From Guillardia theta CCMP2712 (lineage: Eukaryota; Protista; Cryptophyta): a stretch of 57,561 nucleotides of DNA. The position numbers and the translations under genes are program-made. The stretch covers positions 1 to 57,561 of the forward strand of contig NW_005434443.1 of assembly GCF_000315625.1 (NCBI RefSeq), written 5' to 3'. Numbering within the stretch: the stretch's first letter is position 1; each line of letters begins with the position of its first letter. A model generated the notes under the pieces. It did no database searches, was not told the origin of the DNA, and saw only the letters and a program-made list of their open reading frames with translations. Positions 1,210 through 48,438 of the stretch are shown here, piece after piece.

Positions 1210-1232
1210 GTAGTAGTAGTCGATTTTTATTA
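1208..1232 (-). other. Element 3' end: AATAAA followed by an (ACT)4 tail joined to AGGGTTTAGGG
   Basis: Minus strand reads TAATAAAAATCG-ACTACTACTACT-AGGGTTTAGGG. Confidence 0.8.
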
Positions 1233-1776
1233 GAATGCTAGAATAGTCGCATCGGGTACCTTCCCGGTCTAGTCTAGTCTAAATGGGTTCTCACGCTTGG
1301 CAGAGCGGCCCTTCTTGGATGGCCCGTTGTGGCATCCAGGGTTCTATCGCTGTTCCGCTTTTTCTGTTGTTTCCATAGTCCTCCGTTCCGAGCCGCCGGT
1401 GCCGTATCTCCTCCGGGCCCGGGTTGACGGTTTCAGTGTAACCGTCCACCTTTCTATTTTTTGCGCTAAGTCCATGTCCCTTCCCTGCCTGCCGCTTGTG
1501 AAGCTTCCCCATCGGTCTGTCCTCGTTGCCCTTTCCCCTGCCGTCATCCATCTGTCTCCTGTGTCCTTGCCCCTTCCTTGCCATGTTGGTTGTTTTTCGC
1601 CTGTGAGGCTTCCCCTTCGGTCTGTCCGTTGACCGTTGCCCTTTCGTCTCCCATCTGTCTTCTGTGTCCTTGCCCCTTCCCTGCCATGCTGATCCTGGTT
1701 GCTTGCTTTTGAGGCTTCCCTTGTGATCTGTCCTCGTTGATCTTTACCCAGTCATCTTCCAACCATCTTATATCCT

Positions 1777-4545
1777 TCATGCTTGTTCTCTGTTAGTCGT
1801 GTCTCCTCGTCTCCTTGAGGTCCACAGCATGTGTTGCACTTCGAGCAGCTGGATGACTATCTTGGTCATGGCTCTGTCAATCATATCCTCGTCCATGAGC
1901 AAGTTCCGGAAATTTGTGGTCCATTCCCGCTCCATAATACTGCCTCTCACTCCTGCAATGAACGTGGCTTGTAAGACCTCTGTGTTGTCGCTCCTGCTTG
2001 TCATCTCTGCCCGCAGTGCTGCATATTTCTGTTCTTTCTCCTGAAACTTTGCTTTCAGGTTTGCCAGACTGCTTCCCTCGCCCGTGAACTCTGAAGTTCT
2101 CGCTATCTCCACCAGCACAATGCGATTGCTCCCTCTGAAGTAGCAGAGCCCATCTGGTATGAGATTGCCGTGCTCTGGTGCAGTCAGTCCTAGCCCTGTC
2201 ATAGAGTTGATTGGCGTTTGCCACCAACTCTCCTGTTCAACACTTTTCTTCTTCCAGCTTTCTGTCAGGCATCCCTTGATTGTCTCCATTACTCTGTTGT
2301 GTGCCAACGCGATCATGAGCTCAAATTCTTTGCAGGCTAGCTGAACATGCACCCAGCTTTCTTCCCTGCCTTCGCACCATGGGCAACAGGGGGATGTCGT
2401 CTTCTTCCACTGGAACAGCTTTTTCCTCGTTGGTGCTGACCAGGTAATAGCTTGGATAGCTGTCCGAAGTACTGATCCGCGACACCTCTGTAAGGCTCGA
2501 CCTAGGATCCTTCTGCCCACTTGTGGTTCCAGGAGAAAGGTTTCCGTCAAGGTGAGGGGGGCTTCTTTCCTCCTCAGTTCCAGTTGTTCTTCTCTGATTA
2601 TCTTATCCCATATTTTCAATCGATCCATCCCCGGCTTGAAGTTCTCTTCGTCTGCAATGCAGAATCCCAAGTCGCTGTCGATGAGGGCCCGTTCCCACGT
2701 GGAGGAGAAGGAGGATTTTCCCTTGCGGGCTTCTTCTGCAGCTTCTTGCACTACGGTGTGGTCTGCGATCATAGAGAGGTTGATCTCAATGCCCTCCCGC
2801 TGAAATTTGCTCAGGCATTCCTGCAGTCTTCCTGCCAAGTCGTATACGAGCTCGTCTTCATACTGCATGGTAGACCATCTGAGGGTGTCCGTAAGAAAGC
2901 GATGCATTCGGGTTGATTTAAAGAGGACGAAGATTTTCCTGATTGTTTTCTGTTTGCCTCTTTGTTCCCAAATCGCTTGTAGGAGTATGCAGAGTGCGAT
3001 GGTATGTGCTCTGATGACGCTGCATTTTCCGTGTATCTTGATCGCTCCGCGTTCCTGCTCTCCTTCCTTGTCTTGCGTGCTGTATCCTATCGACATTGAT
3101 CGACCCTTCCTGTTTCGTGATATGTCGCCGTGGATTGCGGACCACACTTGGTTCCTGTTCTTCTCCTGTTTGGCCGAGGCTTGATAGTTTTCGTTTTGCT
3201 TCCTTCGGTATTCTTGTAGCTCCTCCTGTTCAGGGATCAGGTGTACTGTGAGTTGGACAATTATTCTCTCTTGTTCCGACTCCTTGCAGTAGACAATCAG
3301 GTCGTCTTGTGACTTCCTGAGGCTCCGATCGCCCGTCCTCCAGAAATTTGCAGCGTAGCATATTTCTGATCCTTTAGGTACCTTACCGACTAGCATGAAG
3401 CCGTCAGGGATTTCTTTCCTGAAGCAAGTTTGGTTCCATCCGATCAAGATTGTTCCAGACTCGCATGCGGCGTAGCTGAGGTATTGTTCCTGTTGGTCGA
3501 TCCATATTATTTCACGTCGAACCTCGTCTTCCTGCAAGCTATCGGTTGCGGCCTGGATTGTCGGGTGATAGAGGGTGGGCCAGTTGCTGAACTGTTTTGT
3601 TTCAGCGAGCATCCCCAAGTGTTCTAGAAATTCGTACGACAGCGGAAGGCCTTGTTGTCTATCTCGAATTTCAGCCATGGCGGTGGTTAGATGTTCCCAC
3701 CAAGCTTGCGAGTTGAGTGAGCTGTTATGTGTTTTGCTGATATACTTAGCAATTTGCAGTAGGATCTCTGTCTTCTCTGGGTTCTTGGCTCCATCGTCAT
3801 CTTCTTTCCTCGCAAATGGCGCCGAGCGAAGGGAAGGTTCAGCTTCTTTGATGTCTTGTTCTTGGCCCGTGTGACTTCTGGGCCGGTCCATGATTGCTAT
3901 GTCGCCCTTGATTTTGAAACTTTCCTTACCTTTTAGGATTAGGTGTTCCTGTTGATCCAGATTGCCTAGTAGTTTAGCCATGAGGGATCTTGTGTTTGCA
4001 TGAGCTGGGTGTGGCCTTCTCTCTTCTGCTGCTTCCCGATGCTTTTTGGATGTCTCCTCCCGGTCCTCCTCTGATTGCGGGTGTGACTTTCGTTTTCGGG
4101 TTGTAGCACTATCCTGCGAGGCAACCTCTCGTCTTTTCCTCTTTGTTCCTGATGCTCTGTTGACGCTGCTTACCCAGATGACATTTTCTTGTAGCAGTTG
4201 CATTACGATCCCCTCCGCCTCCTCGCGTTGCCTTGGGAAAGGCCAGAGCTTCCTTGGCAAATGCAGTTCTTCGTCAGCGATAGGTCGTATATTTCGTAGC
4301 AAGGAGAATTGGAGTTTCGGGAGTTGCCTCCATAAGGCTTGGAAGGTCGTCCAGCCTTGTGGTCTGTCGCTGTCGTTCAAGTTTGCCACCATATCCTCCA
4401 TCCTATGAAGGAGGGAGATGCTTCCAGGTAGGTGACCTGCTTCTATGTGGGCCCAGCTGATCCTCGTGTTTAGTTTTTCCGCCAGCCAGACTGCTAAAGC
4501 TTCGGGTCCCCGCACCACATCACGCTCCATAGTTCGAAAATTCAT
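1777..4545 (-). CDS. Retroelement ORF3 (C-terminal half of pol): degenerate RNase H-like region, CCHC zinc finger, restriction-like PD-(D/E)xK endonuclease
   Basis: CPWCEGREESWVHVQLAC (C-x2-C-x8-H-x4-C), then AHN, PDG, VLVEIA and KEQKY, which is the R2/NeSL-type RLE motif order. Confidence 0.88.
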   Translation of the reverse strand: MNFRTMERDVVRGPEALAVWLAEKLNTRISWAHIEAGHLPGSISLLHRMEDMVANLNDSDRPQGWTTFQALWRQLPKLQFSLLRNIRPIADEELHLPRKLWPFPRQREEAEGIVMQLLQENVIWVSSVNRASGTKRKRREVASQDSATTRKRKSHPQSEEDREETSKKHREAAEERRPHPAHANTRSLMAKLLGNLDQQEHLILKGKESFKIKGDIAIMDRPRSHTGQEQDIKEAEPSLRSAPFARKEDDDGAKNPEKTEILLQIAKYISKTHNSSLNSQAWWEHLTTAMAEIRDRQQGLPLSYEFLEHLGMLAETKQFSNWPTLYHPTIQAATDSLQEDEVRREIIWIDQQEQYLSYAACESGTILIGWNQTCFRKEIPDGFMLVGKVPKGSEICYAANFWRTGDRSLRKSQDDLIVYCKESEQERIIVQLTVHLIPEQEELQEYRRKQNENYQASAKQEKNRNQVWSAIHGDISRNRKGRSMSIGYSTQDKEGEQERGAIKIHGKCSVIRAHTIALCILLQAIWEQRGKQKTIRKIFVLFKSTRMHRFLTDTLRWSTMQYEDELVYDLAGRLQECLSKFQREGIEINLSMIADHTVVQEAAEEARKGKSSFSSTWERALIDSDLGFCIADEENFKPGMDRLKIWDKIIREEQLELRRKEAPLTLTETFLLEPQVGRRILGRALQRCRGSVLRTAIQAITWSAPTRKKLFQWKKTTSPCCPWCEGREESWVHVQLACKEFELMIALAHNRVMETIKGCLTESWKKKSVEQESWWQTPINSMTGLGLTAPEHGNLIPDGLCYFRGSNRIVLVEIARTSEFTGEGSSLANLKAKFQEKEQKYAALRAEMTSRSDNTEVLQATFIAGVRGSIMEREWTTNFRNLLMDEDMIDRAMTKIVIQLLEVQHMLWTSRRRGDTTNREQA

Positions 4546-7500
4546 TTCTCTTTGGAGCTCGAGGATTGTTTGGCATCCCCATTCCGCAAACCAGTTTTTC
4601 TCGTTCGATGTATCGTAGCGCTGCTCGCCCTAGGATTGGGGCAGGATGAGGGACCTGCAGCCCTCCATTCTCTGTTGGCAGGTAGAATATACCATTCCCT
4701 GTACTTTTGCTCAGTCCTAACGCTTGTTTAAAAGCTCTGATCCACAGTTGATCTAATTCTTGTAGATCTCGCCAAGTCCATCCAGTCATGACTGCGGAGT
4801 AGCGAAAGACGTTGAGAATTCCAACTTTCACCAGGTAGAATTTTTGCGCAGGAGTATAACTCGACGAGCTGATGTTTTTGATCAGTTCTTTGGTTTTTTC
4901 AAAGACGTATGCTCGTTCTCCCCAAGTGAAAGGGCAGCCCTTTATTCTTCGTCTTTCTTCCTTCCACAGAGAGATGCGATAGCCGAGATATTTGAACGGT
5001 TTAGTAGCCGGTAGGGCTTCGACAGGTTCCCCCATGACCGTTATTTTGTTCGCACCAGGAACCTCTCCCTTGCGAGCATAGTCGAAGCTGGTTATCTCTG
5101 ATTTCTTATTGTTGATTTGCAGTCCTGACCATTTGCAGAAGGAATCCACCACTGCTACCAATTCTCGCATTTCTTTCATCGTGTGTGCGATGAGTACCAT
5201 GTCATCGGCGAAGGACAGGTTGTTTGTTGTTCCTGTGCTGCACTTGTCCAATTGCCTAGAGAGGATGCATAGCACCAAGTTGGCCAGTTGTGGGCTACTT
5301 GCTCCACCTTGTGGCAGCCCGATTATTAGAGGTATTTTCCCTGTGTTGAACTCGTTTGTTTGTATTTGCAGTTCGACTCCACTGTTGCAGGCTATCACAG
5401 TTCTAATGTCCTCAGGATGGAAGCCTAGGCTGTTCATTGCCTGCTCGACCACCTCGATTGCCACATTGTTAAAGAAGTTCGCAAAGTCCAGGTACAAGAG
5501 AATGAGGGACGTTTTGGCCTCTTCTGCTTCTTCTACGATCGAGATCAGTCGATGAGCCTGCCGACTTGTGCTTCTGCCTGGACGGAACCCCTCCTGGAAG
5601 TTTGTGAGGACGTTGTTTGCTTCTACTGTCTTACTCAGACGATGCGCCAGGATTGCCTGAACCAGCCGAGTAAGCGTTGACATGACGCATATAGGCCGCA
5701 TGTTTTCGAGAATGTGACAGAATTGATTTTTTGGCAGGAGGCGTACTCTCGCTGTCTTGTTGAGAACCTCAGCTTTGCCTTCTAGGGCTGCATTGACTAA
5801 CTTGCCAACTTCCTCTCGGCATGCTGGTGGCAGCGCCCGCAGCACTTCGTTCGAAATGAGGTCAAGTCCTGCAGCCTTTCGTCTCGGCGCCGAGGCGAGC
5901 CAGACATCAATCTCTCCCGGTGCCAGGGGTCTGGTGATTTCCTGTTGTTGTCTCCTTGAAAGCTGCACCCCCTCAGGCGGTGTGATCCGTCTTGGGGCCA
6001 CGGTTGTGAACGACTTACATTTTGTGCAGTACGGGGTCATCCCTCCCCCTCCGATGGTCTCGTCGCTTGAGTCAGCCAAGGGGAGCATACATCCGATGTT
6101 TGAGCATTTTGAGCAGGTCCCTTGTTTCGTGCATGCGTTGACGCTGAAGAAGAATCGTGTATGGTCCGCGTCCTCAAGCTCTCTAACCTTCTGCATTGGG
6201 AGATGATCCGTGAGATCACGGTATCCTGCTATCTCCCATGTTGTTTTATCCGATTCTTCTAGTGCTACAATTGCTTTCGTGATTGTGTTTGCAGGTAGCA
6301 GTGATAGAAAGAGCCAGTCATCTGTCCCCTCTCGCTCGATCCCAATCATCAGTTGCTGGTTTGCACTCCAAAATGCTCTAACACCCCTCGTGTCTTCGCT
6401 AGATAAGGTTGCTTCGATTTGGTTGATGAGCTCGTCGGCATTGTCGACTATCTTGCCGAGCAGTCGAAGAGCCAAGCCTTTGTGGCAACGAAGGGAGTTA
6501 GGGTGTTTTTTCTTGATGTCTTGACTTATCATCGGTTCTTTGGGAGTGAAATCATTCTTGCGTCCCATTGCATTCTGGGATTCACGGCTGCCTACCGTGC
6601 CAAGCCGTGTTTGCTGTTGTTGGCAGATCTCTTGGAAAACTTCGTTGTTTTGTTCTTCACATATCGTTCTGAACCTCTCGATCTTAGTTCGCAATTCTCG
6701 TTGTAATGTAGCTTCCGTAGGTACTCCAGTCGCTGGTCTTTGCTGTGATGCTTCCCTAAGTTTAGTCCGCAAGTTGCGGATCGATCTCTTCAAATCCATT
6801 TGTTCTTTGTTCGCGTGTCGCCTCCCTCCCTTTCTGATTTTTACCTCCTTTAGTGGTAGAGAGTTGGCGAGCATCTCACAAATGTTACATTCTTGCGCCT
6901 TAGCTCGCATGTCTCGTATGTTTGCATCTAGTTGTTGCGCCCATTCGATCTTCTTCTCCTCCCACGTATCGCGATCCAGCACCCATCTGCTTTTAGGGGT
7001 TTCCCCCCTCTTCTGTCGTGTATTCATCTGATGCACTTCCACTCGTGGGATTAGCTGCGTCTCCTCGGATGTGAACTTGGTGTGCACTTGCACCACCAGG
7101 GCTCTGTGATCAACTGCTCCCCCTATCACACAGCCGTCGACCGTCCACGATTGAAGGGAGATGTTGGGGAAGTTGTCCTCATTAGTTGGGGGGTGGATAG
7201 CGAGGACTGCGTCGAGTTTGGCTTCTATCAATTCTTGTTTGTACCATGTTGAGAAGGTAAATGTTGTCCCAGTCTCGCTGATCTGTTCATATGAGAGTGT
7301 ACGGTGTGCGGAAAGGTCTGCCAGGAATTTCTCGAATCTCTCATCTGCTTTTGCGGTGATAGATGAGGGGGAATATCCTCTCCGCATTGGTGTTGTTGTG
7401 TTGGTTCTTGCTGCATTAAAGTCTCCGGCTATGATGTGTGTCTCTCTCGTTCCCAGAGCGAGGTGTAGCAGCTCTGCCCACAGTTCCCCTTGCTCTCGAA

Positions 7501-9229
7501 TCGCATTTTCCGCCGGTACCTGATGGAGGTTCGTGACTACGAAAGAATTTTTCCCTGTTCCGACTTTGATCGAAAACACTCGGTTTCGATATTTCTTTTC
7601 TTTGTTGCACGCCTGAGCGGCATGGGAAGGGGAAGGCGAGAGGGAAGCGTGGACCAGCGTTACCAACCTCAGGTCTCCTTTCCCCTTCTTGGCATTGATC
7701 TTCGCAGGCCCCAGGAAGATTCTGTAGCAGGCCCAGTTCTCCTTGATCATCTTCCTTAATTTGTTCTCGTCGCGGGCCGAGACCCTTACCTCTTGTAGTA
7801 GCACAACCCCAGGTTGGAAGGACTGGATTAAGTATGCGAGGATGTGCTTGAGAACAAAGTGATTGCAACCATTCACATTTTGTGAGATGAGGAAACCTGG
7901 GTCTGAGCTTTTTCGATGCATCTGCGCCCAATCATTGCCCCTTTGCTCCTCCTGCCTTTTCCCCCTCCGCTCCTTCCCTCTCTGGGAGGTTTTCTCTCCT
8001 GAGTGTGCATTCTCCTCCATTTCCTCACCAAAAAGTCTTGGTTGGGGCTTCGTGGTGGTCGCCTGCCGCTGGATTGCGATCGGCTGTACCTTCTCCTCAG
8101 GCTTTGCCGTCGAGGTCATCGGCCGCTGGATTGCGTTTGGCTGTACCTCCTCCTCAAGCTTTGTCGTCGAGGTCATCAGCCGCTGGATTGCGTTTGGCTG
8201 TACCTCCTCCTCAAGCTTTGTCGTCGAGGTCATCAGCCGCTGGATTGCGTTCGGCTGTACCTCCTCCTCCGGCTTTGTCGTCGATTTCAAGCTCTCTTGC
8301 ACCCTCGCCTCCTTCGGCAGAGATCGCAGAATTACCTGGGCCGTTTCCTCCATCTTCTCCAGATGGGTGAGAGCTGCAATCAGTTGTGTTCTGGTTTGCA
8401 TCAGCCATTCTTGCGGAAGTCTTAGTCTTGTCCTCGTTTCCATCGTTGCTAGCCAGTCTTGATTTGTCTCGCAGAGCAGTAGGGTGTGAAGGATAGCAAA
8501 CACTCCGCAGTTGAAGTTATCTTCCTGTTGGAAGGCTGAGCACCACTGTATCTGCCATGGGGCATTGGTCTGATCGTCAAAGATGTGTTCGATCACTCCG
8601 ATTGTCAGCTCAGCCATTTCTCTTGCTCCTTTTGCGTGCTCCCCCGTTGTTACAAGATTCCTCGCTCCCTCGATCCCTCGTGGGTCCCTCGTTGTGCTCG
8701 TTCTGTCCTCGCAGAGGGGGTCCAAGATGTACGCGCATCGCCGATCATATCTTAATGCAATTAGAATCCAGTGGTTGCTGTGGATGATAGTTGGGAACAG
8801 GAAGGTGTGTTGCTCATCTCTCAAGCTGCTGAGGTGAAATCTGTTCCCGACTCTCAAGCGGGACGCCTCGTCTCGCAGACTGGATATTACCCTTGGCAAG
8901 AAGATGATGTTCCGCGTTTGCTGGTCCTCACGAGCTCTCCCTTTGCGTACCATATGTATTGCTCTTCCTCCTTGAAGAGCCTTGCTCATCTCATTGAGAG
9001 TAACTTCGATCATGTTCTCGCATAAAAATCCGCTTACTCCTCGATTGTTCAGGGCAGTGATGCCAAATTCCTTGTCGCCTCGTTTGTCTGACCATGGGAT
9101 CTCCTCGATCCAATCAAAAAAATACAATGTTCTATCTACATGTTGCGTTTCCTTTGAAACCGTTTCCCTCTCCCCCCCTTGCCTACTCCCGGCACTCCCC
9201 CCTTCCTCCTCCCTTCCTCCTCCTGTCAT
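4520..9229 (-). CDS. Retroelement ORF2: Ulp1/C48-like cysteine protease, APE endonuclease and reverse transcriptase
   Basis: Protease: NHWILI, ILDPL, QQEDNFNCGVF (~8470-9100). APE: SQNVNG, LLQEV, AGDFNA, KLDAV, VDH (~7090-7900). RT: KAAGLDLI, LLPK, RPICV, QEGFRPGRS, LDFANFF, LPQGGASSP, FADD, KYLG, ENGGL (~4650-5900). Confidence 0.95.
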   Translation of the reverse strand: MTGGGREEEGGSAGSRQGGERETVSKETQHVDRTLYFFDWIEEIPWSDKRGDKEFGITALNNRGVSGFLCENMIEVTLNEMSKALQGGRAIHMVRKGRAREDQQTRNIIFLPRVISSLRDEASRLRVGNRFHLSSLRDEQHTFLFPTIIHSNHWILIALRYDRRCAYILDPLCEDRTSTTRDPRGIEGARNLVTTGEHAKGAREMAELTIGVIEHIFDDQTNAPWQIQWCSAFQQEDNFNCGVFAILHTLLLCETNQDWLATMETRTRLRLPQEWLMQTRTQLIAALTHLEKMEETAQVILRSLPKEARVQESLKSTTKPEEEVQPNAIQRLMTSTTKLEEEVQPNAIQRLMTSTTKLEEEVQPNAIQRPMTSTAKPEEKVQPIAIQRQATTTKPQPRLFGEEMEENAHSGEKTSQRGKERRGKRQEEQRGNDWAQMHRKSSDPGFLISQNVNGCNHFVLKHILAYLIQSFQPGVVLLQEVRVSARDENKLRKMIKENWACYRIFLGPAKINAKKGKGDLRLVTLVHASLSPSPSHAAQACNKEKKYRNRVFSIKVGTGKNSFVVTNLHQVPAENAIREQGELWAELLHLALGTRETHIIAGDFNAARTNTTTPMRRGYSPSSITAKADERFEKFLADLSAHRTLSYEQISETGTTFTFSTWYKQELIEAKLDAVLAIHPPTNEDNFPNISLQSWTVDGCVIGGAVDHRALVVQVHTKFTSEETQLIPRVEVHQMNTRQKRGETPKSRWVLDRDTWEEKKIEWAQQLDANIRDMRAKAQECNICEMLANSLPLKEVKIRKGGRRHANKEQMDLKRSIRNLRTKLREASQQRPATGVPTEATLQRELRTKIERFRTICEEQNNEVFQEICQQQQTRLGTVGSRESQNAMGRKNDFTPKEPMISQDIKKKHPNSLRCHKGLALRLLGKIVDNADELINQIEATLSSEDTRGVRAFWSANQQLMIGIEREGTDDWLFLSLLPANTITKAIVALEESDKTTWEIAGYRDLTDHLPMQKVRELEDADHTRFFFSVNACTKQGTCSKCSNIGCMLPLADSSDETIGGGGMTPYCTKCKSFTTVAPRRITPPEGVQLSRRQQQEITRPLAPGEIDVWLASAPRRKAAGLDLISNEVLRALPPACREEVGKLVNAALEGKAEVLNKTARVRLLPKNQFCHILENMRPICVMSTLTRLVQAILAHRLSKTVEANNVLTNFQEGFRPGRSTSRQAHRLISIVEEAEEAKTSLILLYLDFANFFNNVAIEVVEQAMNSLGFHPEDIRTVIACNSGVELQIQTNEFNTGKIPLIIGLPQGGASSPQLANLVLCILSRQLDKCSTGTTNNLSFADDMVLIAHTMKEMRELVAVVDSFCKWSGLQINNKKSEITSFDYARKGEVPGANKITVMGEPVEALPATKPFKYLGYRISLWKEERRRIKGCPFTWGERAYVFEKTKELIKNISSSSYTPAQKFYLVKVGILNVFRYSAVMTGWTWRDLQELDQLWIRAFKQALGLSKSTGNGIFYLPTENGGLQVPHPAPILGRAALRYIEREKLVCGMGMPNNPRAPKRNEFSNYGA
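8060..8290 (-). repeat. 60-bp coding tandem repeat x~4 (TTKLEEEVQPNAIQRLMTST) in the protease-APE linker
   Basis: Visible in both DNA and protein. Confidence 0.9.
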
Positions 9230-9238
9230 GATTCGGTT

Positions 9239-11344
9239 TTAGAGCTGAGAGGCAACCTCTCCCTCTTGGTTGCCACTCTCCTCTTCCATCTCCAGTCCCA
9301 TCTCCTCCTCTGCCTTGCTCAAGAGAAACTCAATTTCGTCTCCCGAGCCTACGCTGCCTTGGTAGGTTAGCGTGGCTGTGAGAACTAATTTATTCAGGGC
9401 AAGAAACAACAAGTCAGTTCGAAATTCTTTTTGTTGTTTCTCCCCTCCTCTCCCTGTTGCTTTTGCAAAGGCTCCCTGGCGTCTTCTTGATGCTACCGTC
9501 TCCCACGCATGCTGCTCGCTTACTCTTGCAATCTTACTCTTCAAAACTTGCATGTCGTCGTCCTGGGTTGCCGAGGATGATTCCGCCCATTCCTTCAGCG
9601 TCGGAAAACATGCATTTCCAGGAGATGACAAGCTGTCGTACAGGCCGACGATGGCTCCATCGAGCCTGAGTTTGCAAGCTTGGTTTTCTGCACTCTGTCC
9701 CTGGTTGACAGTCTCCTCCAGAACTTTGTAGATGTCTTCGAGGACCACGTTTGCCTCTGGTTCTGGGATGTTGATCTCATTCTCGATCCGTTCGAGATCT
9801 ACCTGTGCCCACAGAGGCTCCGTGGGGGATTCTGTAGCGATCGCTTCCCAAAGGTTGGCACTGCCTGGCTCTAGGAGAAGAAGTTTCCCCGCCCTGTCCC
9901 ATGGCGCAAAGGACCTGAGTATGTCGATCGCCGTTTCTTTTTCTGAGAAGCTGAGCACTAGATGTTCACCGTTCCAGCTGTTGGTCTCGACATCTTCCTT
10001 CGAGGAGATCTTGACGATGTGCTCAGCCGCTGACTCCTTCCAGCTCGCCACGATCCGTCTCAGTCCTCGAATTGTCATGCCCATAGAGAGATCCTCCCCG
10101 TCGCAGATCTGTTCAGCTTCCTCTCTGGTGAACCTTCCCTTCTGTGCTTTACTCTTGACCAGCACCTCATAGGTCACTCTTCGTGGTACTGCTCCTAGCG
10201 CGTCGGGCAAGAAGTCCAACCTAATTGGATGCTGTCTCGTTACCCTGGTGATTGCACTAACCTGAGTAGTGAACCATTTGAGGATCTTTTCATCTTCCGA
10301 CATCAGTCCGAGGTGTATGCCTCCTCCATTCCTGTCGTCTCCCTCAAACATCCGTAGCGTGGTGCTCAGGACGTCCGTCGAAGAGCATCTCGCAATCCAA
10401 TCGATCTCTCTTCCTTGTCGTATCTCGTCCACTCCGGCTGCTGCGAAAGTGCGTTTGTTGGGCTGACCTTGAGGTCTCCTCTTCGTCTTGACCTCTAGCT
10501 GCATGCCCGCTTCCGGCTGCACCTCCAACACAGCTATTCCTTGTTGCAGCAGGTGTTGACGATAGATCTCCGTAATCCCAGCTGAGTTCATGCCATTCAT
10601 CTTGAGGAGGTGAGAGAACTCAGCTAGGGCCCCCGCCTTGCCAGAGTGCTTATCCTTCTGTGGCCTTATCTTGAAGGAGCAAGGATGCTTCGAATGCGCG
10701 TTCACCGCGCGGATCATCTTTCCGTCGATCCTGAAGTTCGTCTGTCCTTTCCACAGCAGTTCTGCTGCGTCGTTCAATTGGAGTGTTGCCACGACTGGGA
10801 TTTCATCCACTGTCGGAATCAAATCTTTCTTGATCGGGGCTCTCCACGAGATGCATTTCTTGCCCTGCTCCTCGTGCACCAAGAGTCCTTGATCCTTCAA
10901 CTTCTCACACAGTACCTCAACTTGTTTTATGTACTGGGTAGGAACTCCGAGGATAGCCATGGTAATCAGTTTACCACTCTCGGGGGACGCTCCTGAAGCA
11001 TCGATGCAGGCACTCTTGTCTAGTACCTCCTGTTTGTCTGCGTTCCATGCAGAGACATACCACGACTGTCCTTCTTCCCCCCATTCTTTGATGGCATCCT
11101 CCTGGCTCCTGACTTCAGCATGTTTGCAGGTCTGTCGAATGGCTTCGGCTAAGGCGTTCATCGAGACTTCCTTGGACTGCAAGGCTCTGCCTGTCCTGCT
11201 CTGAGGGTACTGCCTGACGAAGTGTTCCAATCTTCGGATCAGCTCTCCTAGCGAAGGTGCTGAAGGTGTCGTGTCCTTGTTTAGGAACTGGGAAACTCGG
11301 ACACGAGCAATCTGTTTCCTTTCCTCTTTGGATAGATACCACAT
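9239..11344 (-). CDS. Retroelement ORF1 (about 700 aa, no recognisable domain)
   Basis: Long ORF that stops 9 nt before the ORF2 ATG. First ATG is at 11344 (the track starts at a TTG, 11350). Homologous to the family B and C ORFs. Confidence 0.85.
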   Translation of the reverse strand: MWYLSKEERKQIARVRVSQFLNKDTTPSAPSLGELIRRLEHFVRQYPQSRTGRALQSKEVSMNALAEAIRQTCKHAEVRSQEDAIKEWGEEGQSWYVSAWNADKQEVLDKSACIDASGASPESGKLITMAILGVPTQYIKQVEVLCEKLKDQGLLVHEEQGKKCISWRAPIKKDLIPTVDEIPVVATLQLNDAAELLWKGQTNFRIDGKMIRAVNAHSKHPCSFKIRPQKDKHSGKAGALAEFSHLLKMNGMNSAGITEIYRQHLLQQGIAVLEVQPEAGMQLEVKTKRRPQGQPNKRTFAAAGVDEIRQGREIDWIARCSSTDVLSTTLRMFEGDDRNGGGIHLGLMSEDEKILKWFTTQVSAITRVTRQHPIRLDFLPDALGAVPRRVTYEVLVKSKAQKGRFTREEAEQICDGEDLSMGMTIRGLRRIVASWKESAAEHIVKISSKEDVETNSWNGEHLVLSFSEKETAIDILRSFAPWDRAGKLLLLEPGSANLWEAIATESPTEPLWAQVDLERIENEINIPEPEANVVLEDIYKVLEETVNQGQSAENQACKLRLDGAIVGLYDSLSSPGNACFPTLKEWAESSSATQDDDMQVLKSKIARVSEQHAWETVASRRRQGAFAKATGRGGEKQQKEFRTDLLFLALNKLVLTATLTYQGSVGSGDEIEFLLSKAEEEMGLEMEEESGNQEGEVASQL

Positions 11345-11430
11345 GATCAAACAACCGTTTCTGCACAGAAAAATGTCCTGTTCAGCACCCTAGCTCGCAG
11401 GGATCCCCTCAAACTGCAGGGGAGGAGAGC

Positions 11431-12271
11431 ATGTCTGTTACTCCAGCGGCCTGTCTGTTACTCCAGCGGCCTGTCTGTTACTCCAGCGGCCTGTCTGTTA
11501 CTCCAGCGGCCTGTCTGTTACTCCAGCGGCCTGTCTGTTACTCCAGCGGCCTGTCTGTTACTCCAGCGGCCTGTCTGTTACTCCAGCGGCCTGTCTGTTA
11601 CTCCAGCGGCCTGTCTGTTACTCCAGCGGCCTGTCTGTTACTCCAGCGGCCTGTCTGTTACTCCAGCGGCCTGTCTGTTACTCCAGCGGCCTGTCTGTTA
11701 CTCCAGCGGCCTGTCTGTTACTCCAGCGGCCTGTCTGTTACTCCAGCGGCCTGTCTGTTACTCCAGCGGCCTGTCTGTTACTCCAGCGGCCTGTCTGTTA
11801 CTCCAGCGGCCTGTCTGTTACTCCAGCGGCCTGTCTGTTACTCCAGCGGCCTGTCTGTTACTCCAGCGGCCTGTCTGTTACTCCAGCGGCCTGTCTGTTA
11901 CTCCAGCGGCCTGTCTGTTACTCCAGCGGCCTGTCTGTTACTCCAGCGGCCTGTCTGTTACTCCAGCGGCCTGTCTGTTACTCCAGCGGCCTGTCTGTTA
12001 CTCCAGCGGCCTGTCTGTTACTCCAGCGGCCTGTCTGTTACTCCAGCGGCCTGTCTGTTACTCCAGCGGCCTGTCTGTTACTCCAGCGGCCTGTCTGTTA
12101 CTCCAGCGGCCTGTCTGTTACTCCAGCGGCCTGTCTGTTACTCCAGCGGCCTGTCTGTTACTCCAGCGGCCTGTCTGTTACTCCAGCGGCCTGTCTGTTA
12201 CTCCAGCGGCCTGTCTGTTACTCCAGCGGCCTGTCTGTTACTCCAGCGGCCTGCTCTGTTACTCCAGCGGC
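11431..12271. repeat. 20-bp tandem array (CTGTCTGTTACTCCAGCGGC) x41 plus one 21-bp variant; 5' end of element A
   Basis: Near-perfect repeats from 11431 to 12250 and a variant unit at 12251-12271. No spacers. Confidence 0.98.
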
Positions 12272-12273
12272 CT

Positions 12274-12308
12274 CCTAAACCCTAAACCCTAAACCCTAAA
12301 CCCTAAAC
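12274..12308. repeat. Telomeric repeat tract (CCCTAAA)5
   Basis: Read directly. Confidence 0.97.
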
Positions 12309-14123
12309 TCCAGGCTCCCCGGAGAGTAGAACGTGTCGTGGAGGTTGCCAACGGCCTTGTCCAGGACCAGCTTGATCGGCTCGCTCGTCCCTGCCTCGTT
12401 CAAAGAAGCTGCATCTTCGATGACTGCTGACAGCTCGCTGACGAGCTGCATGTCCTCTTGGCTTGACGGAGATGCTGCCTCCATTGTGATCCTCTCCAGG
12501 TCTGTAAACTCCAGCCACTCTCCCTCGCTCTCCTCCTGTCGCTGCGCTGCGTCGCTGGTGCCCCGCTGACCAGCCGCCTCAGAGTCAGGCTCCTTGTCGA
12601 AGCCGACTGCTTCGAGCTTGGTGGCTGCGCCTTCGAGATAGAAGGGCAGCTCCTTCATCATGCGTCGAGCATCCTCCGTGGAGCCGAGGAGGATGCATAG
12701 CTTAGACCCGTTCCAGGACTTGGTGTTCAAATCCTCCTCCATGTCGATGCCTTCAACTTTGATCTCGAGCCTGTTAGCGATCTCCAACAAGACTCTCTTG
12801 ACTCTTGCGATGGACGTGTTGCCGCCGTTGCACAGCCCCTCCATCTCCTTCCTCGTGAAGCGACCAGATGCCGCCGTCGACTTGATGATGATCTTGATCT
12901 CCTTGCCGTCCTTGCCGCCTGCCTTCTTCTGCATCCTTGATGCCTTCTTCAACTTATTTCTGGACACAAAGCGATCAGCTGTCAACTCGACTGCGAGCGC
13001 CTCTCTGATCTTCGGGTCCTCGCTGAACAGAGTCAGGTGTACTCCCTCCATCGCTTCGCTCTCTCGGAAAGCTCGAAATGCTGTATCATTCGCCTCTGGG
13101 CAGCTCGAGGAGACGATCCACTCCACCTCCCTCTGTCTCCAGATGACGTTGGCCCCTACAGCGATGAAGCCTTTCTGACCTAAGCCTTTGTGGACTTGCT
13201 GTCCTGGCGCCCCAGCGACCAGCATGCCTGCCAGCGGCTGGAGCTGTACCGCTGCAAGGGACTGGCGCAGCAGCTGATAGCGATAGACGGCAGCTATCTC
13301 AGCCGTTGTCATGCCGCCCAAGGTTAGCAGGTGAGTCAGCTCTGCCAAGCTGCCCCCTTTGCCCCAGGGTCCTCTCTTGGCTCGAATCTTGAAAGATCGA
13401 TCGTGCACGATGCTCACATGTACAGCTGTGAACTTGCGACCATCAATCGCGAAGTCCTCTCTTCCCTGCCAGAGCTTCTCCGCTTGTGCATTGCGGAGGA
13501 AGGAAACAGTCACCGGGATCTCCTCAGCACTCGCTATCTCGGGTCTATACGGAGCCTTCCACATGATTGCTTTACTCTCTTGCACTGAGTCTACGATCAG
13601 TCCGATCTCTTCGAATTTCTTCTTCAGCTTTTCTTCATGGTTGACATACACCGAGGAGATGCCCAGGAGAGTCATGGAGATGAAGGAAGTCACCTCGTTG
13701 CCTGCTGAGGCGGTGTATGTCTCGACCTTCTCCTTCTTGCTTGCAAAAGCTCACGTCGTGCCTGCTGACATGTCGAGCGGATGGCTTCTGCGATAGCGTC
13801 GGGGGTGCATCCCTCCACAGCCTTGCAAGCCTGGGCTGTCCTGCTGTTCGGATGACGCTTCGCGAAGCTCTTCACCCTCTCGACGAGATCAGCTTCGAGG
13901 ACAGAGGCATCCACAAGTCCGCTCTGCGTGTATTGGCATGATCTCCGATACAGCAGGTTGCGAACATTTTCATCATACTGAAGAACCATACTTAGAAAGC
14001 TATTTGAAGTATACAAACCTCTCGCTTGCAGCTTCCTTGGCGCCCTGGCAGCTTCCCCTACACCACGCGTGCAGCCATGGTGCCTGAAATAACCGGCGCT
14101 CGTGCCTGAAATAACCGGCGCTC
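12309..14123 (-). mobile_element. Family B element, 3'-truncated within ORF1; ORF1 is frameshifted by a 61-bp deletion
   Basis: ORFs 13690-14016 and 12296-13693 are two pieces of one ORF1. Bases equivalent to 721-781 are missing at 13739/13740. The 5' end has a 22-bp repeat x2 (14080-14123). The ORF runs directly into telomeric repeats. Confidence 0.88.
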
Positions 14124-14151
14124 TAAACCCTAAACCCTAAACCCTAAACCC
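14123..14151. repeat. Telomeric repeat tract (CCCTAAA)4
   Basis: Read directly. Confidence 0.97.
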
Positions 14152-14565
14152 AATCTGCTGCATAAACCACTCTCTGGATGCGTCACTCCATCCAATCATT
14201 GCTTCTTGTAGAAGCTCACGTCGTGCCTGCTGACATGTCGAGCGGATGGCTTCTGCGATAGCGTCGGGGGTGCATCCCTCCACAGCCTTGCAAGCCTGGG
14301 CTGTCCTGCTGTTCGGATGACGCTTCGCGAAGCTCTTCACCCTCTCGACGAGATCAGCTTCGAGGACAGAGGCATCCACAAGTCCGCTCTGCGTGTATTG
14401 GCATGATCTCCGATACAGCAGGTTGCGAACATTTTCATCATACTGAAGAACCATACTTAGAAAGCTATTTGAAGTATACAAACCTCTCGCTTGCAGCTTC
14501 CTTGGCGCCCTGGCGGCTTCCCCTACACCTGGCAAGGAGCCATGCTGCCGAAAATAACCGGCGCT
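14152..14565 (-). mobile_element. Family B element, 5' ~410 bp only (3'-truncated)
   Basis: Nearly identical to ~729-1140, has a single 5' repeat unit, and is bounded by telomeric tracts. Confidence 0.88.
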
Positions 14566-14619
14566 CCTAAACCCTAAACCCTAAACCCTAAAACCCTAAA
14601 CCCTAAACCCTAAACCCTA
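14566..14619. repeat. Telomeric repeat tract, ~7.5 units including one CCCTAAAA variant
   Basis: Read directly. Confidence 0.97.
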
Positions 14620-14945
14620 GACACTCCTGCTCGAGCGCATTAGTCGCTGCTGCCCTTGGAGAGAAGGCGCTACCCCTCCTCGCTGCCTTGTTCCCTTGCA
14701 CCCGTGTCCAGCGCTGCTCGCCGAGGTACGCTCTGAGCTTTTCTTTCAACATGTTTCGCTTCGATCCCAGCGTCGGCGTGGCTGCCCAAGCTCCGAGCGT
14801 CATGAACTCCACGTTGCCCGGCGAGCAGAAGGTGTCATGCAGCTTGCCAACACTCTTGTCTAGCTCCAGAGAGATCGGCTTGCCAGCTAGCAGCTCCTCC
14901 TCTGATGTCTCCAAGAGCATCGTCGAGAGGTCGAGCAAGACCTGA
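14620..14945 (-). mobile_element. Internal ORF1 fragment of a third related family (C), truncated at both ends
   Basis: ISLELDKSVGKLHDTFCSPGNVEFMTLGAWA aligns with family B IKLVLDKAVGNLHDTFYSPGSLEF and family A LRLDGAIVGLYDSLSSPGNACFPTLKEWA. Confidence 0.82.
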
Positions 14946-14992
14946 CCTAAACCCTAAACCCTAAACCCTAAACCCTAAACCCTAAACCCTAA
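14946..14992. repeat. Innermost telomeric repeat tract (CCCTAAA)~6.5; boundary to unique sequence
   Basis: Read directly. No further telomeric tracts were seen downstream. Confidence 0.97.
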
Positions 14993-27965: not shown

Positions 27966-30900
27966 ATGGCTGCAGCTGTTGTTGCCGCTACTTTGAATCG
28001 GCAGATGCGCGAAGCTGAACAGGAGCAGGAGCTCGATTACTCTCTACATGGCATGCTGGAGGACCCGCACACCTTTCAAAGCAGGATGGCGTCGGTGGAT
28101 AGCGTTCTGGAGGACCTCAAGTCAAAGTCCTTGTTCGGCCCCACGGATGATGCGCTGAAAGAGTCAGAGTCAAAGATTCATGCTCTCCTCGAGAAGGTGC
28201 AGGCCAGGATCGATCGCTCGACAAGATACCGAAAGCTCGCCGGCACCTCCCTCTTCTTCCTCCTCTTCATCCTCCTCGTCTTTGCCCAGCGTGACTCTCA
28301 AGTTCTCTACGTCATTGAAAGCTCGCTCCTCGACGCCCTTGTAGACGACCTTCCTTCCATGCGCTCGGGGGGCTTCATGAACTCCGGGGTAGGAGCCACG
28401 GGATACATCCGCAACAACGACGACCTCTACTCCTGGCTGCAGCAGAGTATCCTCCCGTCCGTCTTCCAAGACCCCGTCTGTGGTGACGGAGTCTGCGACA
28501 GCCCTGCGGAGTACCCGGGCTTCGGTCGCTTCGGCTGCATCCCAGACTGCGGCAAGTATCCCAACCTGACGAGCGTGTCCCTGAGCCTCAAGGACGTGAT
28601 CGCTGACAGCGGAGCCTTGCTGGGGTGGGACCTGACGCTCCTCGACTCGAGCCTGGACCCGAGCAGGAGCAAGTTCACCTACAACATCTACAGCGACACC
28701 ATGAACGCCTTCGTCTTCGAGCAAGACATTGACAACGCGACGCTCTCGCTCGAGCTTCCCGACGGGCAGTACACGCTCGTGATGTATCAGACGAAGCAGA
28801 CGACAGACTTGGTGGACCTGTCTACCATGGAGCACTACCTGAGACTCAATGCGAAGTAAGTAAGTGAATCTTTAGTTATATTCGTTAATGTTGATCGACA
28901 GCACAATCCCGGAGAAGGAACTTTCAAATAGTTTGCACTATGGCGACATGCGGGAATTTCTCTCGTCGGCGATTCTTTTGCTGGAGAACATCATTCATTA
29001 CTGCTCGAAAGAAAGTTCTAGAACCTTTCAAGAATGTCAAGAGCTCAATGTTGAAGGTCTTTCGTTGTTATTGGCCTTATACACTTTCTGATTATCCTTA
29101 TTCGCTTCAGATTTGATCGCTCATTTTCTTGATTCCTATGGACTAAACGGCAGCGTATCCATGAAAGATCGGAGGACAAAAGTCCTCACGCCTCTGTTAA
29201 ATGTAATACACCTGCTCTCACATGCTTGGACTCAAATGCTTTTCTCAGATCAAATTCTGCTCGGCCCCGAACCTTCGCAACAAAACCTACGCGGCCCTCA
29301 AAGAACTGTTCACTTCCTACCAGACCTCCGGCTGCTCCGACTCGAACGCCTTACGCGCAACCCAGCAGAGTCTGTCAGCGACGATGAAGAGAAGCAAGAG
29401 GCCCCTACAAGTACTGCAAGACTTGGTGGACGCGAAGAACAAACATCAGTCCCAACGAGCAACCGCAGCAGGGGGAACACAACAAGTCGGATATACTTGC
29501 TCCTCCCACGCTGACTGCGCTGCCTCCTCCTTCTGCGCTGCATGGACTGTAGTGGCTCCCAGCACCAGCTCCTCCTCCTCAAGGCCAACCAACAGCGCCT
29601 CCTCCTCCACCTTCGTCTGCAAGCCCTGCGCTCTCTGTACCGTGGACACCAGGGACTCCTACGACGGCGTCTGTCCTCAGGACAAGTGCCCTGGCTCCGG
29701 CGGCTTTCCGCCCTGCGTTAACGCCTCTGCTCTTCTCGCCAGCTTCTCCTCCTCCTGCGAGAACCACAACCACTTTGACATCTGGTCCTACGGCTCCTCC
29801 TCCTCCGGCCCGCCGGTTGTCATCCCTCCCTTCACGCCCAAGGTGCTGGAGGTGACGCCGTTCAACCGCATGGTCGGAGCTCTCGTGGTCTCGCAGAAGC
29901 GCATGCAGAGTCTGCCCACGTGCGTCGATCACATCCAGGACCCAGGGCTGCACAACTACACGCTCCTCGCTCAGAGCAGCATCAACTGCCCCTCGACCTC
30001 CGCGCAGGAGAGCACTCCCTTCGGCTTCGACCCGACCTTCATGCCCTCCAGCAGCCTCTACAACGGCGAGCTGCGAGCCGATCGCTTCTACGGCGACAGC
30101 GAGCGACACTCGTTCGTGGACGACAGCGGGCAGGAGGTGATCTCCTACCCGTACGGCTTCTTCCCCCACCGCTACGACTCCAACCACCTCGACCTCAACA
30201 TGGACGGCGAGCTGACGCCCGACGAGCTCGCTCGTGACGTCAACGGCTCTGACTTCAGCAAGAGCCCAGCTGTGGTGGTGAGCTTGGAAGCGGACAACTT
30301 CAAGGTGTACTTCGACGAGCGGCTGTCAAGGAAGCAGGCGCTCGACATGCTGACGAGCCTGCAGGACGGGAAGTTCATCGACTTCCAGACCAAGCAAGTC
30401 TCCGTGGAGCTCATGACCTACAACGCGGTCAGAAACATCCTCTCCTACTGCCAGGTGACCTTCACCTGGGACGTCGGGGGAAAGATCCCGTGGGAGTACA
30501 AGATCACGACGGTGGGGGTGGACAAGATCAAGCACCCGAGCACGTGGCAGCTGCTGCTCATGCTCGCCATCCTGCTGGCCCTGGTGATCAACATGGGGAT
30601 GGAGGTGACGGACATCCTGCACCACCTGAGAAAGTTCTCTGCCTCCTCCTACTTCACCGACCCCTTCAACCTCATCGACTGGCTTCACTTCGCGTTCCTC
30701 GTCGGCTCGGTAGTCAGCTGGCTCCTGCTGCACAGCAAGGCGCGAGCCTTCAGCCTCAAGGTCGGTTACCCGATCCTCTTCTACGGGCCCGAGTACGGCA
30801 GCTCGCGACGAGTCTCCTCCGCCTCCAGCCAAGAGCTTCCCGGTGACTTCGAGAGTCCCATCGCAGTCACCAGCTTCGCCAAGGCCAGGAGGCTGCGGAC

Positions 30901-32624
30901 CAACAACCAGGCCGAGTACGACTTCCTCCTCCTGCTTGACTCGGTCAAGGCCATGGCGTCGGCAGAAGACATGTACGCCTTCTTCGCGGGGATGAGCATC
31001 GTGCTGTTTGTGTTCCGAATGCTCAAGTCGCTGGACTTCCAAGAGCGGATGGGGATGGTGACGAGGACGATCGGGAGGGCGTCGAGCGATCTGTTTCACT
31101 TCCTGCTGCTGTTCATGATCGTGTTCTTGGGGTATGCCATCGTCGGCGTGTTCCTCTTCGGCCATCAGTACGAGGTTTTGATTCCATTACTTGGTTCATA
31201 CATGATCCTTACGACCGTTGCAGGGGATGTCAAACTTGAGCTCGGCCTGCAAGACTCTCGCCATGATGCTCTTCAATCTTGACTCGACCTTGTTCTACTC
31301 CTCGGTACTATCAGAGGAACTTGATGGATATCGTTGACTCTTTTGTTCAGCTTTCACATTCGTCATCGGACGGAGCAGTACAAGTGTTTCTATGGTCCTA
31401 CGTGTTTGTCGTCTTCTTCCTCCTCTTCAACATCTTCCTCGCTATCCTGGTCGACGCGTACGTCAACGTCAAACATGAGGTCGATAAGGCCAACGGGCTC
31501 CTGCAGGACATCGCCCTGTTCGCCGTCCACGGGGCTCGTCGGGTGATTTCTCCCAGCTCAACTTTTATCTCGGACCAGCAGCTGGAGAAGCTACTCAAGG
31601 AGAAGCTGGAGGCCATATGTGTCAAGAACGTCATCCAAGGTGAAGTCAACCAGCACCTCGCCCACCAGAAGGCCATCCTCTTGAAGGGAGGGCATCAGAT
31701 CGGACCGCAGCAGCTCGGCTCCCTGCTGGGCTTCCAAGAGGCCAAGGAGGATGAGGTGGAGGCTTCTGCAACAAGCCTGGACGTTCCAGTGTCGGAGAAT
31801 GCGGCCATGCAGGACGTGATGAGCAGGTACGGGGAGGACGTGGCAGAGCTGCGAGATCGGAGGAACACGGAGCTCAAAGAGATCGTGGGGATGGAGAACA
31901 TGAGGTGAGAGGAGGGAGAGGGAGGCGAACAGCGAGCTGACGGCTTGTGCAGACGTCTGCTCGCCATGAACGCGATTCAGATCGGGATCATGGAGGAGCA
32001 GCGCAGGCTGATTGACCTAGTGGAAGGCATCGCTCGCAAGTCAAACGTGCAGATTCCAAGGACAAGGAGCTGCTTCGAACTGTTTGGGAAGGAGCGAGAA
32101 GGAAACAAGCGGCTGAACCTGACCGTCCTCTCAGCCTCAAAGCTTCCTAAGATGGACTTCTTTCGTAGTTGCGACCCATACTGCGTCGCCTACATCAACG
32201 GCAGCGGGTCCTCCCCCTCCTTCCGCACCAGCGTCGTGCAGAGAAGCACCTCGCCGACATGGAACGAGAAATTCACATGGAAGCTCGGGGGCGACACAAC
32301 TATCCTCACCATCACCCTCTGGGACAAAGACAACGTTGTTCGTGCCTTTGTTTCTCGTCGTTTGACTAGCATGCGCAGGTGTCAAAGGACGACTTGATCG
32401 GCACGGTCATAGTGGATCTCAGGAGCTGTGTGGCGGGAGAAGCAAGGAGAGCAGATTTCCAGGTCAGGAACCCTCAGTGCCAGGCGAAGCTAAAGGATGC
32501 AACATTGTGTCTTGAGATCGAAATATTTGAGGAAGAGGAGATGACAGAGGAGGATTTGGACCAACAACCTAGTGAGTCTCCTGAGATAAGGTATGCTCCC
32601 CCTAGAGTTATCAAGGATGATTGA
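27966..32624 (+). CDS. Polycystin-2/TRPP-like cation channel with a C-terminal C2 domain (copy 2)
   Basis: Same channel motifs as copy 1, plus CGDGVCDSP Cys-rich motif and DLNMDGELTPDE EF-hand-like loop (both also in copy 1). C2: LPKMDFFRSCDPYC...WNEKF...LWDKDN/SKDDLIG. Confidence 0.87.
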
Positions 32625-47500: not shown

Positions 47501-48438
47501 GGTCTTGCTGCTGATGACATATCTCTCCCCAAGAGCATTGCAAGCTACTTTGGAGCCCCACCCGTAGCGGCAAAAAGTCCCGCACAAGTAGCGCTTGAGG
47601 GACGCGCAATGCGGGTTGTAAGACCCATTGGAAGAGTCTTGACCAGATCCGATGACAAGCATCTCTTTGGGATCCGCACATCCCACCCCGTTGTCCTCGA
47701 TGACCAAAGTGCCTTCATCCAGGTTGAGCTTGCACTGGATTTTCCTGACGTCGACTTCTGTGTTGAGGAGCACGTACTGTATGCAGTTATCGAAGATCTC
47801 TCCGATGGCAATCAAGAAGGACGCGTTGGCTATCATACTCTCAATGGTTCTGTTCTTCTTTGGTGTCGTATCTATTATCGACGAGCATTGGAACTTCACA
47901 TTGTCTGCAAGTGTACCCAAGTTACTACACATCGCAATCCGCTCGCATCCATCCACACTCACCTTTCAGCAGCAGCAGCCTGCATGGCCCACTGCAAATG
48001 TCCAAGTTGAACGCGCATATTTCTGATCCAATCTCGCTGTCTTTGCATAACCTTAGCGCCTGCTCAGCCATCAGTCAAATTTGAGAAAGAGCAGGAGCAG
48101 GAGCAAGAGGAGCAGCAGAAGCAGAAGCAGGAGAAGGAGAAGGAGAAGGAGAAGGAGAAGGAGAAGGAGAAGGAGAAGGAGAAGGAGGACAGGGACTCAA
48201 GAATTGTCACCGATGGGGAATCATTCAGCTTGAGCTTATTTATCAAGTGCCTGATTAAGTCTTCACTGCTACCAAATGCTTTCATGTCGTCATGGCTGAA
48301 GGAGATGACGTTTCTGATGAGATCCACGGTCATGAGTGCAAAGTGCATGGAGAAAACATTTCACCTCGAAGGCTGTTCCCCTTGGCGGTTCTCTTGCAAG
48401 ATGCATTCATCAACATAAACCACAATCTCGGCAGCCAT
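41545..48438 (-). CDS. SMCHD1: SMCHD1/GMI1-like protein: GHKL ATPase, transducer, BAH-like domains, Ig-like linker, SMC hinge
   Basis: GHKL: GEIFDNCIQ, IEDNGVG, FCRYGWGSK. SMCHD1-type FYFPY...TVP and FWMGRWLPY. Hinge-like region DVLGCVASLFVV...RHFFGKLILFE flanked by coiled coil (41886-43283). First and last exons are inferred from splice signals. Confidence 0.8.

Follow-up and report, generated by a model that had tools for sequence, protein, structure and literature searches.

Dualen elements are regarded as bridging two groups of long interspersed nuclear elements (LINEs), the older ones, which carry a restriction-like endonuclease (RLE), and those of the apurinic/apyrimidinic endonuclease (APE) type. 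The joint presence of APE and RLE in a single pol defines the Dualen/RandI group (Kojima and Fujiwara, 2005, as cited in later papers; Dualen-4b_cRei, PMC9977147), and the protease of the Chlamydomonas Dualens is Josephin-related (PMC9977147; PMC8557442). Ulp1-like proteases have been described in NeSL and Utopia elements (PMC4640811). Cryptophyte Dualens were reconstructed from transcriptomes, and one of them, Dualen-1_GCr of Geminigera cryophila, was reported to combine SET, C48 peptidase, APE, reverse transcriptase (RT), RNase H, CCHC, and RLE domains, a configuration described by the authors as typical of, and unique to, the Dualens of cryptophytes (Lescot et al., 2016; PMC5029228). The window analyzed here comprises 57,561 nucleotides (nt) of the cryptophyte Guillardia theta CCMP2712 (GCF_000315625.1, contig NW_005434443.1, positions 1 to 57,561). 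With a rough probability of 0.85, its stretch 1777–9229 represents the pol of a Dualen/RandI-type retrotransposon that lacks long terminal repeats (non-LTR) and is inserted in telomeric (TTTAGGG)n repeats.

In intact copies, pol encodes, from the N-terminus, a C48/CE-clan protease, a repeat linker, an APE domain, a cysteine cluster, an RT, a spacer of ~600 amino acids (aa), an RNase H-like domain, a CCHC zinc knuckle, and a putative RLE. The set and order C48-APE-RT-RNase H-CCHC-RLE, of which the RNase H and RLE parts are putative in this element, is common to it and to Dualen-1_GCr as well as Dualen-5_CCu, both of which also come from the same host group (PMC5029228). Compared by published description, Dualen-1_GCr is one protein of 5287 aa with a SET domain, whereas the G. 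theta pol has ~2480 aa, shows no SET match, and is preceded by a separate ORF1 (open reading frame 1) of ~710 aa. Insertion into telomeric repeats, as seen in the G. theta element, is unmentioned in that study (PMC5029228). The first-pass annotation of this locus had proposed that the domain combination is new or rare. Since Dualen-1_GCr already has the same set, the architecture is known, and "rare" is a fair description while "new" is not. The G. theta element is probably a telomere-associated member of the cryptophyte Dualen kind.

The more distant systems share parts of this layout. The Chlamydomonas Dualen/RandI elements also carry APE and RLE in one pol together with an RNase H domain, but their protease is Josephin-related instead of C48, and the sections devoted to them speak of very long target-site duplications and mention no target specificity. 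NeSL-1 and Utopia-1_TSP, which are nematode LINEs of the RLE type, have an N-terminal Ulp1-like (C48) protease before the RT, followed by CCHC and RLE, and insert site-specifically into repeated targets, as here. However, they have no APE, and their targets are spliced-leader or U2 small nuclear RNA genes. The background from which the first-pass annotation had started, namely Ulp1 domains in the NeSL clade (PMC4640811) and a Josephin-like protease in Dualen (PMC9977147; PMC8557442), was correct.

The whole retrotransposon copy occupies approximately 1211–12272 on the minus strand and is bounded by (CCCTAAA)n tracts at 1184–1210 and 12273–12307. Both of its ends thus adjoin the complement of TTTAGGG, the 5′ end (12272) with a 20-bp unit repeated ~42 times in tandem and the 3′ end (~1211) with an (ACT)n tail. 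Elsewhere in the genome (87.1 Mb in 669 contigs), at least 20 more pieces match the element at 96–99% identity, and several of the copy loci that were fetched end at contig ends. Proteins named as those of G. theta CCMP2712 are 99% identical to parts of this pol. ORF1 (9239–11350, minus strand) encodes 703 aa from the first start codon, or 716 codons from stop to stop, and has no recognizable domain. An identical 716-codon frame followed by one stop is present in four other copies. At the junction between ORF1 and pol (9229–9241, minus strand), a TAA, nine bases, and an ATG follow each other in the same frame, a spacing also seen in four other copies. In a related contig of 10.7 kb from another sample (L013), which holds one of the two full-length homologues described below, the ORF1 stop and the ORF2 start overlap as TAATG (2251–2255). 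This coupling looks like termination-reinitiation, judged from the arrangement of the codons, and a UAAUG stop-start overlap with termination-reinitiation is reportedly found in the telomeric LINE SART1. The L013 contig begins with two copies of a 20-bp unit and ends in (AAT)n followed by AGGGTTTAGGGTTTAGG. Given these ends and the close spacing of the two ORFs in both elements, telomere targeting and tight ORF1-ORF2 coupling are traits of the family. The TRAS and SART elements of the silkworm insert into telomeric repeats in a fixed register and likewise have coupled ORF1 and ORF2. They are, however, R1-clade elements of insects with APE only and a (TTAGG)n target, and their likeness to the G. 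theta element lies in the fixed register and the close coupling.

In the window copy, pol is divided into two ORFs on the minus strand. The first (4520–9229, 1569 aa) comprises the C48 protease, the 19-aa repeats, the APE domain, the cysteine cluster, and the RT, and the second (1777–4545, 922 aa) comprises the spacer, the RNase H-like domain, the CCHC knuckle, and the RLE. They lie in different frames and overlap by 26 nt (4520–4545). The linker between protease and APE (8060–8285, minus strand) consists of a 19-aa (57-bp) tandem repeat of the type TSTTK.EEEVQP.AIQR..., the number of which varies between copies. The first-pass annotation had described 1777–9229 as one pol. Each of the motifs that it listed was located on the minus strand where expected, and all are invariant in collinear homologues of ~44% identity, and therefore stand above chance, while an intact single frame is not found in the window copy.

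Two long and intact ORFs that overlap could be joined by programmed ribosomal frameshifting within the 26-nt overlap, and frameshifting is common in retroelements. However, when the window element was aligned to twelve other copies, every copy covering the site 4597/4598 (minus strand) was found to have 53 extra bases there, ~50 nt upstream of the overlap, and, in the copies checked, these bases restore one frame. The form with the 53 bp occurs 16 times in the genome, and the junction without them occurs once, in the window only, where their loss shifts the frame and splits pol. The residues encoded by the 53 bp align with those of homologues from other species, so that this piece belongs to the coding region of the element rather than forming an intron. 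In the copy L004, which has kept them, pol is a single frame of 2482 codons. Programmed frameshifting was rejected on the basis of this single frame and of the 16 occurrences of the longer form, and it is highly improbable. The two window ORFs are one gene, and the window copy is defective.

The missing 53 bp start with GT and end with AG on the sense strand, their boundaries are unambiguous, and no micro-homology flanks them. Their length fits the range of the introns that transcripts of this locus are seen to lose by splicing (mostly 41–68 nt). From these features, splicing is probably the cause of the loss, and the most likely one: the window copy may descend from the reverse transcription of a mis-spliced sense transcript from which a cryptic intron had been removed. 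An ordinary genomic deletion with coincidental GT...AG ends is a possible but rather unlikely origin. It would be a single event in one copy, and no RNA read or contig with the joint was found, at a sense coverage near zero, but such clear-cut ends would be expected by chance at an estimated rate of only ~1 in 256, and the length would have to fall within the local intron range as well.

The dual-endonuclease layout could itself be suspected as an artefact, in which a nested or adjacent APE-type LINE, an RLE-type LINE, or a host Ulp1 fragment had been wrongly joined, given that the APE-RT and CCHC-RLE parts are in different frames in the window copy and that the ~600 aa between the RT and the RNase H-like domain have no family match. 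Against this, other copies run uninterrupted across all domains for up to 2482 codons, and other cryptophytes have two full-length homologues (2573 and 2575 aa) that align collinearly with the element from end to end at ~44% identity. All parts of pol, the spacer included, also evolve under constraint (see below), and the same layout is present in the literature (PMC5029228). A nested insertion was rejected because of the end-to-end collinear homologues, and a wrong joining of any of these kinds is almost certainly not the explanation. Fragments of the family are also found under the labels Hanusia phi and Rhodomonas salina, and the single locus recovered by a scan of metagenomes seems to be the contig of a known homologue.

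In the APE-RT region, the divergence of the window copy from the other copies is ~6% for synonymous sites and 0.7% for non-synonymous ones, and the other copies form a tight cluster at 0.5–1.4% from one another. There are at least two sublineages, both of them under purifying selection as estimated from these substitutions. The ratio of non-synonymous to synonymous change (pN/pS), which sets the lineage of the window copy against the others and is in effect one comparison with few changes per domain, is lowest in the RT (0.05), followed by CCHC plus RLE (0.08), ORF1 (0.08), APE (0.09), the RNase H-like domain (0.14), C48 (0.15), the spacer (0.17), and the linker plus cysteine cluster (0.28), and is thus well below 1 in every part. 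Estimated in this way, pol is under purifying selection, which agrees with its conservation across species.

The N-terminal domain (8330–9103, minus strand; aa 43–300) was claimed by the first-pass annotation to be an Ulp1-type C48 protease, and this was borne out. The window copy itself scores below the cut-off of the Pfam family PF02902 (E 0.034; 14.4 bits against 20.7 bits), but both full-length homologues score above it, with 37.6 bits for P0002 and 26.5 bits for P0001, as do more distant fragments found by an exhaustive search of representative sequences with the protease region, which gave nine matches, mostly short fragments. When a profile of the family was compared with PDB, C48/CE chains alone were matched, the best being 6dg4, an Ulp1-like SUMO protease (1.8e-5), and yeast Ulp1 (1euv, 5.3e-5), followed by SENP1, SENP2, SENP5, ChlaDub, and XopD. 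An AlphaFold (AF2) model of the protease, with a predicted local distance difference test (pLDDT) of 66.8 and a predicted template modeling score of 0.69, matched NEDP1, SENP, and Ulp1 in Foldseek with E-values of about 1e-5 (7e-6), and a search independent of Foldseek (VIA) returned SENP, Ulp1, and NEDP1 at Z 13–15 over 180–206 residues. The residues H153 in SNHWIL (8762–8779), D170 in YILDPL (8714–8731), and Q235 and C241 in QQEDNFNCG (8498–8533), all on the minus strand, are the proposed catalytic residues. They correspond in the alignment to the motifs HW, D, and Q....C in 6dg4 and follow the order known for the family, with a His-Asp-Cys triad and a Gln of the oxyanion hole. By profile, predicted fold, and catalytic residues, the N-terminal domain is a C48/CE protease.

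The C48-like domain could nevertheless be a decayed, non-catalytic relic or a module that binds ubiquitin-like proteins, with no protease role in transposition. The sub-threshold Pfam score of the window copy, the moderate confidence of the model, and a short deletion just past the domain core in L004 would all fit such a domain. However, the catalytic His, Asp, Gln, and Cys are invariant in homologues at ~33% identity, the homologues pass the Pfam cut-off, the fold match extends over the whole catalytic domain, and the pN/pS of 0.15 indicates constraint, so that a relic is improbable. As to its substrate, enzymes specific for SUMO, for NEDD8, and for ubiquitin are matched equally well by the fold, and no class is set apart. 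A search for the host SUMO gene gave ubiquitin as the best match, and the other matches were apparently split by introns.

The APE domain (7085–7897, minus strand) is placed N-terminal to the RT and matches Pfam Exo_endo_phos (E 8e-8). Its best sequence matches in PDB are LINE-1 endonucleases. The catalytic motifs NVNG (7865–7885), QE (7784–7801), GDFN (7409–7429), D (7205–7222), and DH (7097–7117), all on the minus strand, are invariant in the homologues. About 90 aa past the APE domain, in the interval before the RT, lies the motif (I/L)R-x-GG-(K/R)R (6815–6832, minus strand), of which GG and the next R are invariant in a three-way alignment. A GGG at the N-terminus of pol is conserved in the same kind of alignment. 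From its sequence, the motif may be considered a candidate site of protease cleavage. The zinc ribbon that had been noticed between APE and RT corresponds to a cluster of the form C-x5-C-x2-C ... C-x2-C (6011–6139, minus strand). It matches no family, but its five cysteines are invariant in the homologues of 44% identity, and it is regarded as a putative zinc-binding module upstream of the RT. The RT itself, with fingers/palm and thumb (4610–5734, minus strand) and the motif FADD (5198–5215, minus strand), gives a strong match to Pfam RVT_1 (E 6.5e-35), and the earlier identification of both APE and RT therefore stands. Among solved structures, the RT is closest to R2 proteins (9nl2, 85 bits) and then to LINE-1 ORF2p (62 bits), scores that would fit a lineage between the restriction-like and APE clades. 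R2Bm and R2Tg (8ibw, 9dou, and 9nl2) have this closest solved RT and a C-terminal layout of CCHC followed by a PD-(D/E)xK domain, which the G. theta element would share, but R2 has no APE, protease, or RNase H-like insertion, and its target is 28S rDNA.

The C-terminal 483 aa were modeled from only four sequences, with a pLDDT of 41.6, and all matches to this model are weak evidence. The RNase H-like domain (2716–3153, minus strand) was recognized in it at a low confidence, all of the 50 best Foldseek matches at model residues ~30–200 being type-1 or retroviral RNases H and the search independent of Foldseek giving Z 5–6. No Pfam match to this domain was obtained with the window copy or the homologues, and the positions of the DEDD residues are occupied in the homologues by D/N, H/N, S/T, and E. 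The proposed RNase H-like domain is thus weakly upheld as a fold but not as a Pfam match or by its catalytic residues, and, as read from these substitutions, it has probably lost them and is inactive. The CCHC zinc knuckle C-x2-C-x8-H-x4-C (2332–2388, minus strand) agrees with the prediction, as its residues are invariant and weak zf-RVT matches fall at the same place in three proteins (E 0.0025–0.016).

The last domain (1786–2238, minus strand) is a putative restriction-like (PD-(D/E)xK) endonuclease, recognized by conserved motifs and a modest structural match. Its motifs are PDG (2143–2163), an E strand (2095–2118), and KxxKY in a K-rich helix (2023–2055), all on the minus strand, and six homologues that come from several cryptophytes all keep the I-P-D-G, E, and K..K-Y residues unchanged. 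Searches of PDB gave no match at E up to 10, whether the query was one sequence or a profile of four or of six, and Pfam gave nothing relevant. In the search independent of Foldseek, which covered 48,161 chains, the best matches to model residues 331–481 were the cap-snatching endonucleases of arenaviruses and bunyaviruses, R2Tg 1253–1390, and R2Bm 975–1078, at Z 5.7–6.5 only and on the model of pLDDT 41.6. The two R2 segments are the R2 nuclease domain. The invariant PD...E...K motifs and this structural similarity are supportive of an RLE but not decisive, and the RLE of the first-pass annotation is retained on these two grounds, with no sequence match in Pfam or PDB to accompany them.

Several points weigh against the assignment to a Dualen/RandI-type element. 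The RLE, one of the two nucleases that characterize the group, has no sequence-profile match, and its structural match reaches Z ~6 on a model with a pLDDT of ~42. Membership in the Dualen/RandI clade is deduced from the architecture and the literature. The evidence of selection comes in effect from the one comparison mentioned above. No RNA reads with the 53-nt sense splice were found, which is little informative as the sense coverage is near zero. In addition, a repeat survey lists no LINE/Dualen in G. theta (PMC12747079). A search of the literature turned up no report of telomere-specific LINEs from Guillardia.

Around the element, the window contains pieces of a second element family in the same orientation (1–1183 and 12308–14992), each of which starts with one to three copies of a 22-bp repeat, and short (CCCTAAA)n tracts lie between the pieces. 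Together, these pieces are arrayed head to tail in the direction of the contig end. The 465-aa ORF of the second family (12296–13693) has no Pfam match. About 15 kb or more inside the array are host genes, an SMCHD1-like gene (41886–47962, minus strand) and a polycystin-type channel gene (29222–31282, plus strand). The other long ORFs of the window were considered as further elements, and this was rejected, as they are these SMCHD1-like and polycystin-like host genes. With such ordinary genes on its inner side, the array thus marks the end of a chromosome, with normal genes adjoining it.

The antisense strand of the element is transcribed and spliced in the region L010:1501–5618, which corresponds to ~1334–5398 of the window on the plus strand. 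Fourteen joints were detected in the contigs of three runs and in raw RNA-seq reads, 12 of them with GT..AG on the antisense strand (CT..AC on the sense strand), and most joints skip 41–68 nt. A poly(A) tail is present in reads at L010:4016 (~2936 of the window). The spliced products contain no open frame above 154 aa, on account of which antisense coding was rejected, and this suggests that the antisense transcript is a non-coding RNA, perhaps linked to silencing.

As judged from related families, the element may integrate by target-primed reverse transcription into the telomeric repeats. On the plus strand of the window, the C-rich repeat is followed without a break by the complement of the (ACT)n tail. 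The cDNA strand is thus continuous with the C-rich strand, and first-strand synthesis would have started, in a fixed register, from a nick in the latter. Of the two nucleases, one would nick the target for priming and the other would cut the second strand. Cleavage after Gly-Gly is a property of CE-clan viral proteases and of Ulp1/SENP enzymes. Given this specificity, together with the conserved LR-x-GG-KR and the N-terminal GGG, the protease would most plausibly process the protein of the element itself after Gly-Gly, by analogy with these enzymes. Alternatively, it may act on a protein of the host or of the element and remove a ubiquitin-like modifier. The first-pass annotation had envisaged processing of the polyprotein or removal of SUMO from telomere-binding proteins. 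In a more specific form, which is speculative and stands at low odds, self-cleavage at LR-x-GG-KR and GGG would free a protease-APE part from an R2-like part with the zinc cluster, RT, CCHC, and RLE, or a modifier would be stripped from telomere-bound proteins, opening the target. If the self-cleavage is true, the nucleases would become two separate proteins, with the two strands of the telomeric repeat as their substrates.

The annotation of a Dualen-type family in G. theta adds to the record of the repeat survey of this species (PMC12747079). With its near-identical copies, defined (TTTAGGG)n target, and frame under purifying selection, the family of G. theta, a laboratory alga with a sequenced genome, may serve as a practical system for the study of strand cutting and of the role of the protease.

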